A DNA stretch of 64,000 nt, from assembly GCA_020891255.1 (NCBI GenBank), contig BQFW01000002.1, positions 1,798,001 to 1,862,000 of the forward strand. Reading direction: 5' to 3'. The notes beneath the pieces were generated by a model. It saw nothing but the letters and a program-made list of their open reading frames with translations. It had not been told where the DNA came from and did no database searches. Position 1 is the first letter of the stretch, and every line of letters starts with the position of its first letter. The stretch comes from Entomortierella parvispora E1425. Taxonomy: Eukaryota > Fungi > Mortierellomycota. The position numbers and the translations under genes were made by a program. Shown here in pieces: positions 8,011-15,545 of this stretch.

Positions 8011-11000
8011 ATGGATCCTTCACCCCATGTCACTGCATCCGGACGGTCATTCTCCATGTCTTCTGTCCGTCACAACCTTCGACCCGCTACCTCTTCCTCG
8101 CCCGGACAACTTTCAAGCAGCAGCAGCAGCAGCAGCAACCGAAACAATAACGTCGTTGCCTTTTACGCCAATGCTGACTTTAGTAACAACATCAACAGTC
8201 TTTTATCCAGTGGTGCAACCGACAGCCACCGTGAAGGCCGTGCCACCAGCTCTCGGGCCTTGCTGACTTCAGCCCTGGAAGAGGCCCAGACCGCGGTCCA
8301 GCTAGACCATCTTGGTAAAACAACAGCTGCCCTGGATTCCTACCGCAGGGCCACAGCGTTCCTCGCCACTGCCATGCAAGTTAGTACCTCAGAAGAAGAG
8401 CTTCATCGGCTGCAAACTATAGTAAGCAAAATGGCAACAAGTATTTTATGGTTCACAAGCTTCAGAGCGTACATACAGCAGTGCTCACTTGTGGAAGCAA
8501 AAGCAATTGTGGATGAGCTCAGAGGGTTGACCATTATCCACTTTTTTCTTGTTCCTGCTACTACTGCAGGTCGACTCATATCAACTCAGGATCCATGTCC
8601 TCGCTGCAAAGGCAGCGGAGCCTCCCTTGATATCCATGCCAAAGTCAGTGCTAGCCAACTACTCGTCATCTGCACCTTCGGCGAATATATCACCGTTGGA
8701 CGAAGCAACGTCCACGGGAAGATCTCTGAACTTTGCCATGCCTTCGCGATCACATGTTGCCTTCCAGGGACGGGGGGATTCTCAGCCTGCAACTACGTCT
8801 GTTGCACCCCTGAAGACAAAGCGAAGTGTCAGCAGCAATGCTCTCGTAAAACAGAGTCTTCACGGAGAGGCTCTTCCTCGCGATAGTAACAGCAAGAAAG
8901 GACGGTCACCTCGAGGTCGAAGTCATACAATTGGATCGCTGTGCAGTAACCCAGGAGATCTCACCACCTCCACAGAGCCGCTTCGGATCCCTAGACGACG
9001 GACTGAGCATGTTATCAATGAAACGGATTATAGCAGTGACTCTGGAAGCAACTCTAGCGGTGCCAAAAAGCGAGCCAGGGACCTCTTATTGGCCAAATAC
9101 ACTCCCTTGCATTTGGCACCCACTGTGCCTTTGCCTCCTCTACCATCGGATGATGCATGGTCACGGCCTTCTAGAGCGATTTCTCGCCCATCTGAAACGC
9201 TTCACTCGCCACCTTTATCGCCCAAAAAATCCTCAAGGAGAATCTCGCCACTGGTACCGTTGACTACAGCGATTGACCGTGAAGCATCCATTCTCTCACC
9301 TGTGTTCCACAGTAATCTCCCGTCACCCGTGTCGCCACAATTAGTGGCGCCTCCTGAATCATTCGTGGAAACGTACAGTAAAGAAGCAGAAGCGTTCTCG
9401 CTGACACTAGAGTCGGATGATGGTTCCTCGCCACATGGAAGACAATCGGAGGAGGCTATCTCAATATCAAATGCTACACCTTTAAGCAGTCGGGAGATAT
9501 TTTCGTTGACGCCTGTGTTTCACAACACCCGCAAGGCTGCTTCACCTAAACCTGATATACGAGGAGCATCAACCCCATTACTAGCGGAAGGGACCCATGA
9601 TCCGTTTATTCACGTCCCTACTTCCCATAATACTGGCAAGCCCGAGACTGATTCTCAGCCAAAGAACTTGCCAATTCAGTCTAAAGGCAGTAACAGTCAT
9701 CATGGCATTGAGAACGTAGTCAAGGAGGCAGCGGTAACGACACCGGATACATGGTTACCCAACTTCTCAGATTACTTTGCACAAAGAAGCGATGGTTCGC
9801 CAGCCCGTCGGCGACGTGTACAAATTGAAGGTATGACAAGGGTTTTTTGAAATGGAGATGAACATGCAGAGGGTCTAAAACAGGAGTTTCTTTCGTTTAC
9901 GATCAGAGCCGCTTAGCGAACATGAGGAAGATCAAGACTCGGTTATTAAAGAGTTGGCGGCTGAACTCGAGCACACGGACAGAGCTACTCCTTTAGCACG
10001 GAGAAACGAGCCTTATTCGACAATATCTGTCCATTTTTCTACAACATTCGTCCACCGAAAACGTCAAGAGTCTCTTTCATCCGTCTCACCTGCAGAGCCG
10101 ACGAGGACCTCCGCCCTTGGCGGATCAAGCTCTTTGGCCTTGAATTCTGATCCTTCACTGCGGTCCAAATCTGCAGGGGGCTCTATTGCTCGGGCCGCAC
10201 TCTTTGATAGGCCACTTCCACCTGATCCATCTTCGATTTCCAGTTTTCCTCCAGGACTTTCCTCGCCGATGCCAGATTTGCCAAAGGATAGACGCCAATT
10301 ACGCCGCAGTTGGACCCTTCTTGATGTTATCAATGATGATCCCTTCCAAGGCGTGAACGAGGTGAGCAAAGAGAGCCTTTTGGTAGCTGTCGACGTATTG
10401 GATTCAATGTTAATCATATCATAGATCTGCTCTCTAACCAATATACGACCTTCCGTTTTCAGTCTTATCAGCGAAAGATCCCAAATCAGGAACCTACTCC
10501 TACAGAGCCTTTTCTCCGTTGCTTTTGGCTGATGCGCCGATTAGAACAGACCATGACCCAGGGTGGATTCCTAAGTAAGCGACTCTATGTCCCTCCTCAA
10601 GTGTGGTATCAACGAGCATTGGTCCGACTACCAGCAGTGGAAACAAAGCTTCAGGGATGTCAACAACTGGCGAAAATGTTGGACGACCTCATGATCCAAT
10701 CTAAAAAGGGGATCATTACTCTTTTGATCCCTGGAGGAGCTGGTGTCGAGCAGGATCATGATCGGTTGATGTTGTTGAAGGAGCTGGAGACACTGGAACT
10801 CGTAGCCTTGCAGATCTGGACCAAACTCAGCAAGAAGCTTTCGTTCATCCAAAAGCCAGACAAACACCCTGGGTCCATGGGATTGAGCGCAAGTATGGCT
10901 GGAGGCTCAGCAGCCTCAACTGCTCGGTCGGACTCTGCAGGTGCCAGTAGTACTGGTGGCCGCGCAGACCACTCAAGGGATAATACACTACTATCATCGT

Positions 11001-12013: not shown

Positions 12014-12285
12014 AAAAGAAAAACAGAAAAATGAGAACTCCGCCTCTATTCATTGCTGTTCAAGAACTGAGATCCATATCATCCCCCCCCCCCCCCCCAA
12101 AAAAAAAGAGATCATGACGATCCCAACAATATTCGATCAGGGCAAGAAACCAACCGTGTACATATCAAAAAGGACATGGGTCGGCCAATGGCCAGTAGGT
12201 GGAGAGCCAAAAAGGACCGTGTCCTTTGTGGTCGTCGGTTGAAGATCTTCAGGTGGGTGTTGCCAAAATTAGCAAAAGAACTGAG

Positions 12286-12358
12286 TGCCCCAACTCGGAG
12301 TTGAACCGAGGACCTTTTCATTACGAGTGAAACGTTATAACCACTAAACTATTGGGGC
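12286..12358 (-). tRNA. tRNA-Thr (anticodon CGT), intronless, 73 nt
   Basis: Reverse complement GCCCCAA-TA-GTTTAGTGGTTATAAC-G-TTTCA-CTCGTAA-TGAAA-AGGTC-CTCGG-TTCAACT-CCGAG-TTGGGGC-A. It has a 7-bp acceptor stem, 5-bp anticodon and T stems, A and B boxes, and a TTCTTTT Pol III terminator just downstream. Confidence 0.98.
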
Positions 12359-12360
12359 CG

Positions 12361-12503
12361 TCTCAGATAATTATTTTTTAGAATTTTACAATAAATACTA
12401 ATATCTCAGAAACCGAAACCCTTAAGTAAATTAAACATCACGTGATTATTATATTTAAAAATCTTTTGTATAAATTTATAATTATTCTAGGTATTATTTT
12501 AAT
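12361..12503. promoter_or_regulatory. AT-rich island upstream of the tRNA, containing palindrome ATCACGTGAT (12437-12446)
   Basis: 26 G+C in 140 nt over 12361-12500 (~81% AT); about 92% AT over 12445-12503, against a background of about 50% GC. Confidence 0.55.
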
Positions 12504-12518
12504 GCTTGGCCATACAAG

Positions 12519-14757
12519 TTGGAATACTACAATCAACATGGTGGACCCAAGTTACGAACAATGGACGATGCAGAAGACGAGTTCAGATCCCAAGAACATA
12601 ACGCTGACAAGGATTGGCTGAAGGATGAAGTGCGTCGAGTGCGAAACCTGGCCAAGCTAGAGGCGAAGGAACGGGCCTACCATGCCAGGAGTCAAGAAGA
12701 AGCTCGAAGACAACAAGAGGCAGCAGCTCGAAGACAACAAAAGGAAGCCCGAAGACAACAAGAGGAAGCTCGAAGGCAACAAGAGAAACAAGAGGCAGCT
12801 CGGCGGCAGAAAAGACGACAAGAACGACAAGCGGCGATCAAGAACAAGGCCCTCCGGCGGCGGGTGGCACAAGAGCGACGGCTCAAAGACGCCCACCGGA
12901 GGCGGTCCGAAAGACTCAGGTCGGTCACAAGAACGTTCAAGGCACGAAAAGCAAGGACCCGTAAACTTCAGAGAAAGTACCTTCAGCCTGAAGGTGGCAT
13001 CAATGAAGAAAGGCTAGAACAAGACGCGCGGACAGAATTGAGCAAGTCGACAACACCGAGGGAGCGGGACCTACCCAGGAAAGACAAGTTCAGGGACATT
13101 TATGGACTCTTAATCACGACAGTGGTAGAAGACGCAATCCTGGAGGCACGAAATAGTCTGGAGGGCCTGGGACCCCTGGAGTTCTACTCGGATGGATCGT
13201 TGAAGGACCATGGACTCACAACAATCAGCATGGCATTTGGTGTTGTCATTAAGAGGCCAGGAACCGTACGGTACAGGACAGTCATCTCTGGTAAAGTGTT
13301 GGGCTTTGCATCCTCAACAAAAGCTGAGCTAGTAGGACTGCTGGCAACAATCTTGGCATGCCCCCAGAGACACACAAGCGACAGTATTTATTGACAACCA
13401 GACAGTGGTTGACAAATTCAAGACGCTTGTGGTAAACAGAAGAACAGCAACGGCGAGAGAACGGCTGCGGTCCTCGTACTCCGTATGGTGGGCAGCAGTG
13501 GCTAAAGCATTCGAACGGCAAGGTCAAAAGATCAGCGTCAAGTGGGTCAAAGGACATGCTGGGAACATAGGCAACAACATGGCAGATATTGCCGCAAAGG
13601 CGGCACATACCAAGGACGCTTGGGACATGGACCCCGCGGTGCACACAGACATGAAGTGCCATGCAACTTTCAAGGGACGGCTGGTAGAAGACGACCTGCG
13701 ACAAGTGCTGAAGAAACAGTCAGTGGCAAGGACACACCTCAGATGGGCAAACCAGCGCAGAACAAAGGCAATGATTCCAGAATGGGGACTTGTTGAGTGG
13801 CAAACAACAATTGCTATCGTTCACAACGGCTCCAAGCCGAGAAGCTTGTTTACAAGCAACTCGGACTGCACGAAACGGGCACACAGGGTAAAGAAACTGC
13901 ATGGCATGTTGCCTACGCAAAAGTACATGCACAACTGGAGACCGGACCTATATGAGGATGACTACTGCCGAGTCTGTGAATCCAATGTGGAGGACACAAA
14001 TCACATATGGAGGTGCCCAGAAACGCTGACGAGTCAATGCGAAGGTTGGGAAGAGACAATGGAGTTGGTGACCAGCCTTGGAAAAAAACTGTGGGAGCGA
14101 GCAAAGGAAAGCTGGGAGAGCGAGAAGAAGAAAGCAGAGGAAGAAGGCAAGGAATTCAAGAAGAAGGAACCGACGTTTTCGAACGAGACTATGGACAGCT
14201 TTTGGACGATGCTGATGGATTATTTCCGAGGAGCAAGAAACATCAAGGAACAAAACCTACTGGATGACGATATGGAAAGAGAGGAAGTGGTCGATCTCGG
14301 ATCACTCGGATGGCGACCATGGACGGTCATCGACGCCTACCACGGATTGGCGCCACTTTTCCTGAAAGACAAGTTCCAGACACTGTTCTACACGACCCAA
14401 GAGATCGCGAGCATCATGGCGGACAGGTTTATCAAAGGCATCGAGGACTACGGCCGAACAGGGATTTGGAATCCACGTTGCAAAAAGACTGTGGACTGGG
14501 AGAAGTCTATCGGAGTTACTGGTGTGAGCAAACGTACCAGGCCTGAGGAACCGGGTACCCGTGCTGGCGGACACGGAGGTAGCAACAGTAACTTTGGTAA
14601 CTTTAACCGGGACAGGTTTGATGTGACAAGGATGAAGAGACTCCACAAGGCTGCGGACAAAGATGTCTTAGATGAATACCAAGGAAAGGGCGTGTTGAAC
14701 GTCATGGAAAGAACAGGGGGAGTGAAGTACTTCTTGGAAAAGGATCTCGGAAACTAG
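12519..14757 (+). pseudogene. Retroelement ORF2 C-terminal part: charged helix + RNase HI + CCHC zinc knuckle, split by one +1 frameshift
   Basis: FYSDGS (13182-), KAELVG, [frameshift in C5 run 13361-13365], VFIDNQ and WVKGHAGNIGNNMAD give the D-E-D-H-D set. CRVC-x8-H-x3-C lies at 13966-14016. Removing one C gives CPRDTQATVFIDNQ and a single ORF of about 750 codons. Confidence 0.9.
12699..12809 (+). repeat. Five degenerate 21-24 bp repeats encoding EARRQQE inside the retroelement ORF
   Basis: gaagctcgaagacaacaagag / gcagcagctcgaagacaacaaaag / gaagcccgaagacaacaagag / gaagctcgaaggcaacaagag / ...gcagctcggcggcag. Confidence 0.9.
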
Positions 14758-15001
14758 TGACGAACGAGCATGAAAGGCCACAGAGGGGACTGGACCTGGC
14801 CTTGCTGTAGCAAGCCAGAAGCTCCCGCCCTTTGGTCGCGGTGTTACGAAACCAGGGTGCATGGGCCGTCATAGACGGGTTGTGCAATGCAAAAGCATTT
14901 TATTTAGTCCGTTTCCCTTGGGTGGAGCAGGCGCACCTGCGTATGTGTACTTACAATTAACAGACAATAAACCCCGTACCTGCGAGGGACCCTTTGACAA
15001 G

Positions 15002-15037
<36 letters not shown>

Positions 15038-15545
15038 ATTTTAATGCTTGGCGGTTTGTTCTCGCCGTGAAAGGAACGAGCGAATGGGTGGATTCTATAG
15101 TTGGGAGTGGCTCGTCGATCACAGTTGATATTTTCAAAAAAAAAACAGACAAAGAGAACCAACAGCATAGAAGTGAAGAATGAAAAAAAAAAAAAAAAAA
15201 GAAAAAAATAACAGAGGGCGTCTTTGGATGTGATCGGACGTTTTCCGTCCAAGCACAGGCGTGGGGCGAATCACCAGCGAGATCGCGCGTCTTGGGTTGC
15301 ACGCAGGGTTTGTGCGTGTGGAGAGAGAAAAGAGACAACTCAGTCAAACGGGCAGACGGTCGGACGGAGCTCACACTTTCTTCTGTGCGGCGATCGTGTC
15401 CCTTTCTTGTTCCTTGCCCCACATCCCATCCACGCCTCGGGTCACTGTTCTGCCGACCCTTTGGCTCTTCATTCCTTCATAAAGCAAAGGTCTCCTTTTC
15501 CATTCCTTTTTCTTTGTCTTTGTCTCTCTTTCTTCATCACTTCCT

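Follow-up and report, generated by a model that had tools for sequence, protein, structure and literature searches.

A LINE family of Entomortierella parvispora E1425 that inserts at a defined distance upstream of tRNA genes

Introduction

The textbook illustration of retrotransposon survival in a compact genome is the targeting of Pol III genes. LINEs integrate by TPRT and have no integrase, and for them the described cases that we found come only from dictyostelid amoebae; in the literature searched, tRNA-upstream LINEs lie ~4 and ~50 bp from their targets (PMC5006619). TRE5-A of Dictyostelium discoideum (and TRE5-B/C) is an APE-type non-LTR element with two ORFs whose insertions occupy defined positions upstream of tRNA genes; its TSDs vary, its copies are often 5'-truncated and can be stacked, and its host genome is compact (PMC5911963, PMC5006619). 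The TRE5 elements lie 44-54 bp from the tRNA gene, TRE5-A in the opposite transcriptional orientation to it, and their ORF2 has the order APE-RT-zinc finger, without RNase H. Binding of the TRE5-A ORF1 protein to TFIIIB has been shown. Two elements unrelated to the TREs, Pp_NLTR-B of Polysphondylium pallidum and Dp_NLTR-A of D. purpureum, bear an RNase H and target sites ~50 bp and ~4 bp upstream of tRNA genes, respectively (PMC5006619).

Ty1 of Saccharomyces cerevisiae inserts some distance upstream of Pol III genes by way of chromatin and Pol III (PMC5911963). It is an LTR element with an integrase, and its insertions occupy a broad window of up to ~1 kb, with nucleosomal periodicity and in both orientations. 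Ty3 and DGLT-A type LTR elements also use an integrase, and the Pol III complex directs them to sites beside tRNA genes, at or within ~30 bp of the start site. The Tx1-group LINEs Keno (U2 snRNA), Mutsu (5S), and Dewa (tRNA-Leu spacer) are associated with small-RNA genes (PMC3706591), and each recognizes one DNA sequence.

We analyzed a 64-kb stretch of DNA (the window) from Entomortierella parvispora E1425, a fungus that can be cultured and for which a near-complete assembly has been published. A sequence-only reading of the window had proposed a tRNA-upstream-targeting LINE, with the caveat that it rested on one copy, and knew of none described in Mortierellaceae; our literature search found no LINE with this habit in any fungus. 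The family that we describe resembles TRE5-A in its APE-type, two-ORF organization, its variable TSDs, truncations, and stacks, and its orientation opposite to the tRNA (22/23 tRNA-linked copies in E1425). It differs from the TRE5 elements in its spacing (106-152 bp, median 147), in an ORF2 of ~2025 aa that includes a linker of 590 aa, an RNase H, a CCHC motif, and an extra C-terminal region, in an ORF1 with tentative RRM and CCHC features, and in its fungal host, and it has no binding data. The RNase H is shared with Pp_NLTR-B and Dp_NLTR-A, which belong to amoebozoans and insert much closer. Unlike Ty1, it uses TPRT and shows a single narrow peak in one orientation; to Ty3 and DGLT-A it is unrelated. 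In contrast to the Tx1 group, it has used 12 different tRNA genes, and its TSDs and targets differ in sequence, so that targeting is by position.

Our best overall explanation, to which we assign a probability of roughly 0.88, is that the window contains a young, 5'-truncated copy of an APE-type LINE belonging to a position-specific family, with a tether to the Pol III complex or its chromatin that is inferred.

The insertion upstream of tRNA-Thr(CGT)

The features of the insertion are shown in Table 1. ARAGORN gave a single tRNA in the 64 kb, tRNA-Thr(CGT), as the earlier reading had claimed, and this gene was also the highest-scoring RF00005 match genome-wide (G000:C2:1810286-1810358). The tRNA end, the TSD, the A34 tail, and the head-to-head position of a plus-strand element, all reported before, were confirmed. 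We measured a gap of 152 bp from the first tRNA base to the first element base, and the TSD spans -135 to -152 relative to the tRNA; the first-strand nick is inferred to have fallen at the tRNA-proximal TSD edge, ~134 bp from the tRNA. The claim that this is the only mobile element in the window agrees with our result that the remaining window sequence had no match to the repeats in the 56 fetched loci, but this is not a full transposon annotation.

Except for a 1-bp indel, the window copy is 100% identical to a full-length copy on G000:C2. A detail missing from the sequence-only reading is a private 1-bp insertion that disrupts the window ORF: a run has five C where two other copies have four. 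Because of this frameshift the ORF was searched as two pieces. The insertion is a very recent, dead-on-arrival LINE copy, both 5'-truncated and frameshifted. The linker segment between RT and RNase H differs in length among relatives, as seen in an alignment with two metagenome relatives. The TCACGTGA box between the tRNA and the element is a member of a genome-wide tRNA-upstream motif zone.

Table 1. Features of the tRNA gene and LINE insertion, in window coordinates
Feature	Position	Strand	Description	Evidence
tRNA-Thr(CGT)	12285-12358	-	5' end 12358; intact Pol III gene adjoining insertion	ARAGORN; RF00005 71.4 bits
TCACGTGA box	12438-12445	.	80-87 bp upstream of tRNA-Thr(CGT); undamaged by insertion	sequence
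Left TSD copy, ATTATTTTAATGCTTGGC	12493-12510	+	tRNA-proximal; 18 bp; exact repeat of 15035-15052	
LINE copy, 5'-truncated	12511-15035	+	terminal 2.5 kb of ~8.2-kb element; 5' end toward tRNA 5' end	
ORF2 linker segment	12696-12920	+	Glu/Arg/Gln-rich; between RT and RNase H; probably helical	translation
RNase H domain of ORF2	13170-13605	+	frameshift-split in window copy	Pfam PF00075
Catalytic D/E/D/D motifs of RNase H	13185-13599			
Private 1-bp insertion	13361-13365	+	in C-run; frame broken	alignment of three copies
CCHC motif (CX2CX9HX4C)	13966-14016	+	downstream of RNase H	translation
ORF2 stop codon	14755-14757			
3' UTR	14758-15001	+	244 nt; retained by nearly all truncated copies	~30 genomic matches end there
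A34 tail	15002-15035	+	uninterrupted	
Right TSD copy, ATTATTTTAATGCTTGGC	15035-15052	+	first A common to poly-A tail	

Architecture of the family

The family is an APE-type LINE of ~8.2 kb. Coordinates were mapped with a BLAST query joining L032:4240-9982 to window positions 12511-15035, two natural overlapping copies that are otherwise identical. ORF1 encodes 602 aa and overlaps the start of ORF2 by 8 nt. In the full-length copy its Pfam matches to RRM_1 and zf-CCHC were both below the cut-offs; its Atlas neighbors are Mucoromycota clusters with RRM_1, and the translation contains a CX2CX4HX4C knuckle. An exact look-up of a record for ORF1 found none, and neither ORF1 nor the C-terminal piece of 450 aa had a match in PDB sequence searches.

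The order in ORF2 is APE, RT, linker, RNase H, CCHC, and C-terminal region. The full-length copy matched PF03372 (APE-type endonuclease; residues 53-285, E=1e-10) and PF00078 (reverse transcriptase; residues 669-935, E=3e-20), and the intact metagenome relatives carry the same two domains; a full-length RNase H match was obtained in an intact relative (E=6e-11). The best PDB matches of ORF2 were human L1 ORF2p and R2, with similar scores. An Atlas neighbor cluster of the intact ORF2 is automatically named 'Transposon TX1', which we take only as a lead. These PDB and Atlas results are no more than hints toward placement in the L1/Tx1 clade. The hallmarks of TPRT are present, namely a 3' poly-A, TSDs of variable length, and nested 5' truncations with a common 3' end: ~30 copies end at the same 3' position and start at different 5' positions.

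Distance and orientation of the genomic copies

A search of the E1425 genome with the element gave 49 matches, mostly 3'-end pieces, as expected for 5'-truncated LINE copies, and ~36 insertions of the family were resolved, which removes the one-copy caveat. Only the best candidates were scored, and the counts are lower bounds. Twelve copies are inserted directly at 12 different tRNA genes, 106-152 bp upstream (median 147). The gaps are 152 bp at Thr-CGT, 148 at Lys-CTT, 148 at Gly-GCC (the full-length copy, with a 20-bp TSD), 149 at Glu-TTC, 134 and 106 at two Thr-AGT genes (the second on C7), 145 at an intron-containing tRNA, 141 at Gly-GCC on C11, 138 at Ser-AGA, 146 at Arg-TCG, and 148 and 151 at two Asp-GTC genes. 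Ten further copies are head-to-head with a tRNA but separated from it by retroelements or other sequence, newer insertions having displaced older ones outward into stacks. When the later insertions were removed together with their own TSDs, four stacked sites gave restored gaps of 137, 137, ~142, and ~114 bp, so that, with direct (12) and restored (4) gaps taken together, the element lies 106-152 bp from 16 tRNA genes.

A tRNA lay within ~2 kb of 23 insertions, on the 5' side of the element in every case and divergent in all but one. Copies placed independently of tRNA genes, or at random distance and orientation, would have spoken against the proposal, and the opposite was found. By chance, 0.005 copies among 36 would be expected in such a position against the 12 observed (P=6.5e-38, with 192 nuclear tRNAs; PMC8759367), and P remains 2e-28 if 1193 tRNA candidates are assumed. 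In an unselected sample, 6/59 nuclear tRNAs had a LINE copy within 2 kb. Position-specific integration upstream of tRNA genes is therefore an observation about which we have very little doubt.

The same pattern could in principle come from random insertion followed by survival only in harmless DNA beside tRNA genes, or from segmental duplication of tRNA-LINE blocks. The genome is gene-dense, and rearrangement or a location away from tRNAs is commoner among older copies, as such survival would allow. However, selection cannot produce a window ~50 bp wide with a single orientation, and 8/12 of the youngest copies (>=97% identical) are direct tRNA insertions. Flanks, tRNA isotypes, TSDs, and truncation points differ between copies, which marks them as separate insertion events rather than duplicates; the one pair that appears to be duplicated is subtelomeric (C6:14869 / C14:2242489). 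Both versions are effectively refuted by the spacing and orientation.

Six further copies have TSDs of 10-20 bp in addition to the 18-bp TSD in the window, and these seven well-defined TSDs have nothing in common except an initial A. Since the TSD sequences are unrelated, the target is a position and not a sequence. The gaps were also normal at a long tRNA-Ser (84 nt) and at the 104-nt tRNA that contains an intron, a hint that the anchor sits on the gene's 5' side and not at box B. That the distance is measured from the tRNA 5' side is, in our judgment, probable.

Motifs between the tRNA genes and the insertions

CACGTG occurs at -55 to -107 in 16/23 tRNAs and GCCACCAA at -93 to -124 in 9/23, both just inside the insertion point. 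The TCACGTGA motif has 635 sites in the genome against 380 for a reversed control, with strong enrichment near tRNA genes. This distribution is what one would expect if a bHLH-type factor bound to TCACGTGA/GCCACCAA boxes, or motif recognition by the endonuclease, guided the element in place of the Pol III machinery. Against this, no CACGTG was found within 200 bp at four direct targets (Glu-TTC, Thr-AGT on C7, the intron-containing tRNA, and Gly-GCC on C11, which has only degenerate CAGGTG/CATGTG boxes), nor was it seen in the 146-bp stretch that precedes the tRNA in the related metagenome locus L053. These box-less targets keep gaps of 149, 106, 145, 141, and ~146 bp, respectively. At targets that do have a box, the box-to-nick distance varies by ~40 bp while the distance from the tRNA start is stable, and the TSDs and nick sites lack a common sequence past the initial A. 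Guidance by the boxes is disfavored, and we consider it very improbable.

Proposed mechanism

We consider it most likely that integration occurs by TPRT under a tether to the Pol III complex or to the chromatin associated with it; the tether is inferred, with no protein-protein or chromatin evidence. From the geometry of TPRT, the first nick would fall on the tRNA-sense strand, ~127-135 bp upstream of the first tRNA base, the priming end would be T, as each well-defined TSD starts with A, the second nick would follow 10-20 bp farther out, and cDNA synthesis would be directed away from the tRNA. A protein of the element may be held by the Pol III pre-initiation complex (TFIIIB/TFIIIC, on the side of the gene 5' end) or by chromatin organized there. 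Such a tether would put the endonuclease just beyond an extended control zone with a TATA-like element and the TCACGTGA boxes (-55 to -107). With the endonuclease outside this zone, the tRNA gene and the neighboring genes would be spared.

Which surface holds the element is less clear. A direct contact with TFIIIB, as in TRE5-A, is possible but doubtful, and it is an analogy only, because the spacing is about three times longer than that of TRE5-A; at 130-150 bp, the insertions lie well beyond the TFIIIB footprint on which TRE5-A or Ty3 relies. The distance also bears on another explanation, in which chromatin alone sets the position and the element, like Ty1, nicks the linker or the far edge of a positioned first upstream nucleosome (~147 bp) without contacting a Pol III factor. 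In favor of this, both the median gap (147 bp) and the first nicks (~127-135 bp) lie about one nucleosome from the tRNA start, well past the TFIIIB footprint, and there is the precedent of Ty1, which reads the nucleosomes in front of Pol III genes (PMC5911963). However, the symmetric edge of a nucleosome cannot alone explain the strict orientation (22/23), and there is one peak without the periodic peaks of the Ty1 type; nucleosome data are lacking for this fungus. We regard positioning by chromatin alone as possible but rather unlikely.

We tentatively propose, at somewhat less than even odds and without an RT phylogeny, that Pol III safe-haven targeting arose in a fungal LINE lineage separately from the amoebal TRE and NLTR elements and relies on a different ruler. 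The endonuclease of this lineage would act ~130 bp from the start of the tRNA, immediately beyond a lineage-specific upstream zone of E-box clusters, by means of a long-reach tether (either ORF1 or the 590-aa linker of ORF2, which includes the charged helix), possibly to a partner that is not the TFIIIB surface on which TRE5-A and Ty3 rely, and at least three unrelated families would split the niche by distance. The three-fold longer and sharply defined spacing offers a second system in which to study how host factors position a TPRT machine, and a position-specific LINE is of interest as a model for safe-harbor integration.

Copies that do not fit

About 12 of the ~36 insertions had no Pol III gene within ~1.5-2 kb of the 5' end. 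One of them, G000:C11:703359-703906, is young and has a clean TSD, so either targeting is not absolute or some targets were unrecognized. Rfam at a permissive threshold found no additional tRNA, 5S, or U6 at 14 tRNA-less loci. An intron-containing tRNA at L024:2545-2689, given by ARAGORN only, was unconfirmed and left out of the counts. Two pieces show other arrangements: a 108-bp fragment (L048), located 36 bp upstream of a 5S gene and with the geometry reversed, and a diverged piece (75-80%) that is found downstream of tRNA-Phe and has the same orientation as that gene.

An intact relative and other retroelements at tRNA genes

An intact relative (L053/L054; ORF2 of 2031 aa, 70-74% nt identity) is present on a metagenome contig of a related fungus. 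It starts ~146 bp upstream of a tRNA-Glu(TTC), head-to-head, and an older related fragment lies directly behind its poly-A. Its single-copy flank is 80% identical to the E1425 genome and maps to C14:106-109 kb, where we sought the orthologous empty site but found no tRNA-Glu(TTC) copy. The tRNA-upstream habit is conserved across two or more Mortierellaceae-like lineages, and intact copies of the element are found in nature. Together with the E1425 distances, the stacked copies, and the divergent orientation, this shared geometry supports the family proposed from the window.

A 608-bp solo LTR lies 15 bp upstream of two tRNA genes in E1425, which indicates that several families use the niche, as in Dictyostelium. 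The spacing of the LINE family also suggests that tRNA genes of these fungi have a protected upstream region of unusual length. The distances of three unrelated retroelement families were -15 for the solo LTR, ~-110 for a poly-A element, and ~-147 for the LINE.

The LINE copy and its family in the genome

The window (G000:C2:1798001-1862000) lies within a 38.9-Mb, 20-contig assembly of E. parvispora E1425, a genome published as 38.66 Mb in 19 nuclear contigs plus the mitochondrion, with 192 nuclear tRNA genes (PMC8759367). Its tRNA-Thr(CGT) gene was the best RF00005 match genome-wide. ARAGORN and reading of the sequence confirmed four features that had been noticed without database searches: this tRNA, the target-site duplication (TSD), the poly-A tail, and a LINE standing head-to-head with the tRNA gene. 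The plus strand between the repeats carries the 3' part of a LINE ORF2 (see table). The rest of the window had no further match to any of the fetched repeats.

The search of the genome with the window element gave 49 matches, mostly short and sharing the 3' end, which is the pattern expected of 5'-truncated LINE copies. Upstream of two long copies we recovered the full element, of ~8.2 kb, with a 20-bp TSD (GCAACCTTCTTGATGTTCGA) and starting head-to-head with tRNA-Gly(GCC). ORF1 (602 codons) has RRM-like and CCHC features. ORF2 (~2025 codons) starts 8 nt ahead of the ORF1 stop and encodes, in order, APE, RT, a linker of ~590 residues, RNase H, CCHC, and a C-terminal region. This sole full-length copy is split in ORF2 by a 7.66-kb LTR retrotransposon (168-bp LTRs, 99% identical; 5-bp TSD).

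The window copy is identical to the full-length copy across 2.5 kb apart from one additional C within the run at 13361-13365. That C, which causes the only frame break, is missing from two other copies and so is either a private mutation or a homopolymer error. Because of the identity to the full-length copy the window insertion is very young; the sequence-only reading had inferred a young one. Other LINE families, with RT DNA ~64% identical to that of this LINE, were found at three loci (G000:C1:514090, C11:1439473, and C5:1501118; L038, L039, and L040).

Coordinates of the LINE copies, of their tRNA genes, and of neighbouring retroelements. C, contigs of the E. parvispora assembly (G000); L, fetched loci with their own coordinates; gap, tRNA base 1 to first element base.
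Feature	Location	Strand	Gap (bp)	Remark
tRNA-Thr(CGT)	window 12285-12358	-	152	ARAGORN; single tRNA gene in the 64 kb
18-bp direct repeat ATTATTTTAATGCTTGGC	window 12493-12510 and 15035-15052			sequence reading
Glu/Arg/Gln-rich linker	ORF2 part of window copy	+		
RNase H domain	ORF2 of window copy	+		Pfam PF00075; D/E/D/D motifs located
CX2CX9HX4C motif	window 13966-14016	+		~245 codons more before stop
Stop codon of ORF2	window 14755-14757	+		followed by 244-nt 3' UTR
Uninterrupted 34-A run	window 15002-15035	+		end of LINE copy
TCACGTGA/CACGTG box	window 12438-12445			upstream of tRNA-Thr(CGT)
Full-length copy, Gly-GCC	L032:4270 to poly-A at L005:2687		148	
Lys-CTT	C2:1246731		148	
Glu-TTC	C2:3182970		149	
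Thr-AGT	C3:1466801		134	
Thr-AGT	C7:712196		106	
Intron-containing tRNA	C9:223266		145	
Gly-GCC	C11:747397		141	
Ser-AGA	C12:152419		138	
Arg-TCG	C13:1363103		146	
Asp-GTC	C14:778873		148	
Asp-GTC	C14:1772239		151	
LTR retrotransposon	L033:96-7755 (G000:C2:2893795-2901454)			within full-length copy
594-bp poly-A element	L024:1765-2374			reference copy; 3' end unrelated to the LINE
594-bp poly-A element	L012:1282-1446, L014:2000-2036, L015:1979-2434, L034:8267-8459 and 8933-9834, L044:2372-2946			more copies
608-bp solo LTR	L009:2256-2863, L018:798-1396; also L007:2456-3069, L010:2053-2165			
LINE fragment + poly-A element pairs	L021:1501-1775 and L022:1501-1775 (G000:C14:2242489-2242763, C6:14869-15143)			identical
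LINE 3' fragment at 5S rRNA gene	L048:1856-2119 (G000:C5:1873555-1873818)			108 bp; 86% identical

Positions of the copies relative to tRNA genes

All matches were mapped on fetched loci, which were scanned with ARAGORN (introns on and off) and Rfam. Our counts gave ~36 separate insertions of the LINE family, 12 of them directly upstream of a tRNA gene, at 106-152 bp (median gap 147 bp). Without exception the tRNA was found at the 5' side of the element, in divergent orientation in 22 of 23 cases. For a site chosen at random, the probability of lying 100-155 bp from a tRNA, upstream and in the right orientation, is 1.4e-4 (192 tRNA genes); 0.005 such cases were expected and 12 observed among 36 insertions (P = 6.5e-38), and with all 1193 crude tRNA candidates P was 2e-28. 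The tRNA-upstream targeting proposed in the sequence-only reading is thus supported: distance and orientation of the other copies show a strong excess and are not independent of tRNAs. Six of the 59 nuclear tRNAs scored by RF00005 search carry a LINE copy within 2 kb; extrapolated, this rate implies ~216 tRNA genes, and the published number of 192 is similar. Neither duplication nor retention bias can account for the pattern, because tRNA isotype, flank, TSD, and truncation point all vary from one insertion to the next.

A further 10 copies stand head-to-head with a tRNA 298-1834 bp off, and in six of the 10 identified retroelements lie between. These are of two kinds, a 594-bp poly-A element, itself 104-124 bp from the tRNA, and a 608-bp solo LTR. 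When the later insertions and their own TSDs were removed, the restored LINE gaps were 137, 137, ~142, and ~114 bp. At the C3 tRNA-Thr(AGT), a 99%-identical LINE copy is nearest, and behind it are an 88% poly-A element and an 88-93% LINE copy; this age order, with the youngest nearest the tRNA, indicates that newer insertions displace older ones outward. Copies with at least 97% identity, the 12 youngest, include eight direct tRNA matches and one behind the solo LTR.

For ~12 insertions, scans of the loci with ARAGORN and Rfam detected no Pol III gene out to 1.5-2 kb from the 5' end. Two of these are behind poly-A elements, others form a subtelomeric duplicate pair, and several more are old or rearranged; one (C11:703359-703906) is clean and fairly young, with an 11-bp TSD. 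The identical pairs of LINE fragment and poly-A element lie near two contig ends, mutually inverted, and are probably a subtelomeric duplication, not two insertions. One LINE 3' fragment points the same way as a 5S rRNA gene and stops 36 bp short of it, on the upstream side. This arrangement inverts that seen at tRNA genes and is unexplained. A 75-80% relative sits downstream of tRNA-Phe.

Relatives in another lineage

A metagenome scan with a 450-aa C-terminal piece of ORF2 revealed two relatives (65-66% protein identity), collinear with the LINE at 70-74% nucleotide identity. In both, ORF2 is intact, at 2031 and 2005 aa, and carries APE and RT as well as a full match to RNase H. The contigs of one end within ORF1 and are uninformative. 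The other, on a complete contig (L053), starts ~146 bp upstream of tRNA-Glu(TTC), head-to-head; L054, from a second sample, has the same insertion. Directly behind its poly-A is an older 5'-truncated related LINE copy (L053:8506-9300), the same stacking as in E. parvispora. The single-copy flank of L053 shares 80% identity with C14 of E. parvispora, which identifies the host as a related fungus; the habit therefore belongs to the lineage, not to one genome.

Junctions and comparison with known systems

In target-primed reverse transcription, the poly-A adjoins the flank that gave the primer. This places the first nick at the tRNA-proximal TSD edge, on the tRNA sense strand. With clean TSDs this edge is at -134 (window), -127 (full-length copy), -133, and -135, and at less certain junctions at ~-127, -127, -118, and -87. 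The second nick would fall 10-20 bp beyond the first, away from the tRNA. The TSD sequences are unrelated apart from an initial A in all, so the priming end is a T, able to pair with the poly-A, and the endonuclease is placed by position, not guided by sequence. The gaps are normal at an 84-nt tRNA-Ser and at the 104-nt intron-containing tRNA, and these two cases, the only relevant ones, favour measurement from the 5' side of the gene (start site, box A, TFIIIB) over measurement from box B. The molecular tether is still to be found.

The only non-LTR elements near tRNA genes that a 2018 review of Pol III targeting names are TRE5, TRE3, NLTR-A, and NLTR-B, all dictyostelid (PMC5911963). TRE5 copies lie 44-54 bp upstream, oriented opposite to the tRNA gene, and the ORF1 of TRE5 binds TFIIIB (PMC5911963, PMC5006619). 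The E. parvispora LINE works like TRE5 but fails two of its defining features, as the spacing differs and RNase H is present; the fungal family is distinct in its ~130-150 bp spacing and RNase H-bearing ORF2 of ~2000 aa. Sequence-specific LINEs such as Dewa, Mutsu, and Keno recognise DNA sequence (PMC3706591), whereas the E. parvispora LINE is positional. Among fungal LINEs, Zorro3 inserts into poly-A tracts and Cnl1 at telomeres (PMC7175516). A full-text literature search, with most subscription-journal papers outside its coverage, found no fungal LINE described as tRNA-upstream-targeting. Our results support position-specific targeting of Pol III genes by a LINE in a fungus; the targeting itself is of a known kind.

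Upstream motifs of tRNA genes

One to three CACGTG boxes (mostly TCACGTGA) were present at -55 to -107 in 16 of the 23 tRNA genes in the fetched loci, and GCCACCAA(A) at -93 to -124 in nine. Genome-wide, TCACGTGA had 635 sites and the reversed control 380; of five unselected tRNAs on contig C1, two had a TCACGTGA site, at -61 or -72. The LINE inserts just outside this motif zone. The boxes are unlikely to anchor insertion, because tRNAs without them are hit at the usual distance and the LINE-to-box distance varies, whereas the LINE-to-tRNA distance does not. Even so, they offer a reason why the spacing is long: insertion at that distance leaves an extended upstream control region intact. The literature search found no paper on a CACGTG-type motif upstream of tRNA genes, and we regard the TCACGTGA/GCCACCAA boxes as a candidate for an upstream Pol III gene element specific to this lineage.

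Other tRNA-adjacent retroelements

The 594-bp poly-A element, which often has the same discrete 5' end and lies between the tRNA and older LINE copies, is probably the short partner of another LINE family. The solo LTR (TGTCGTGA...TCACGACA; 4-5-bp TSD; copies 97.5% identical) is 15 bp upstream of tRNA-Glu(CTC) and tRNA-Asp(GTC). This position resembles that of Ty3/DGLT-A and suggests that the genome also has an LTR family that targets tRNA start sites.
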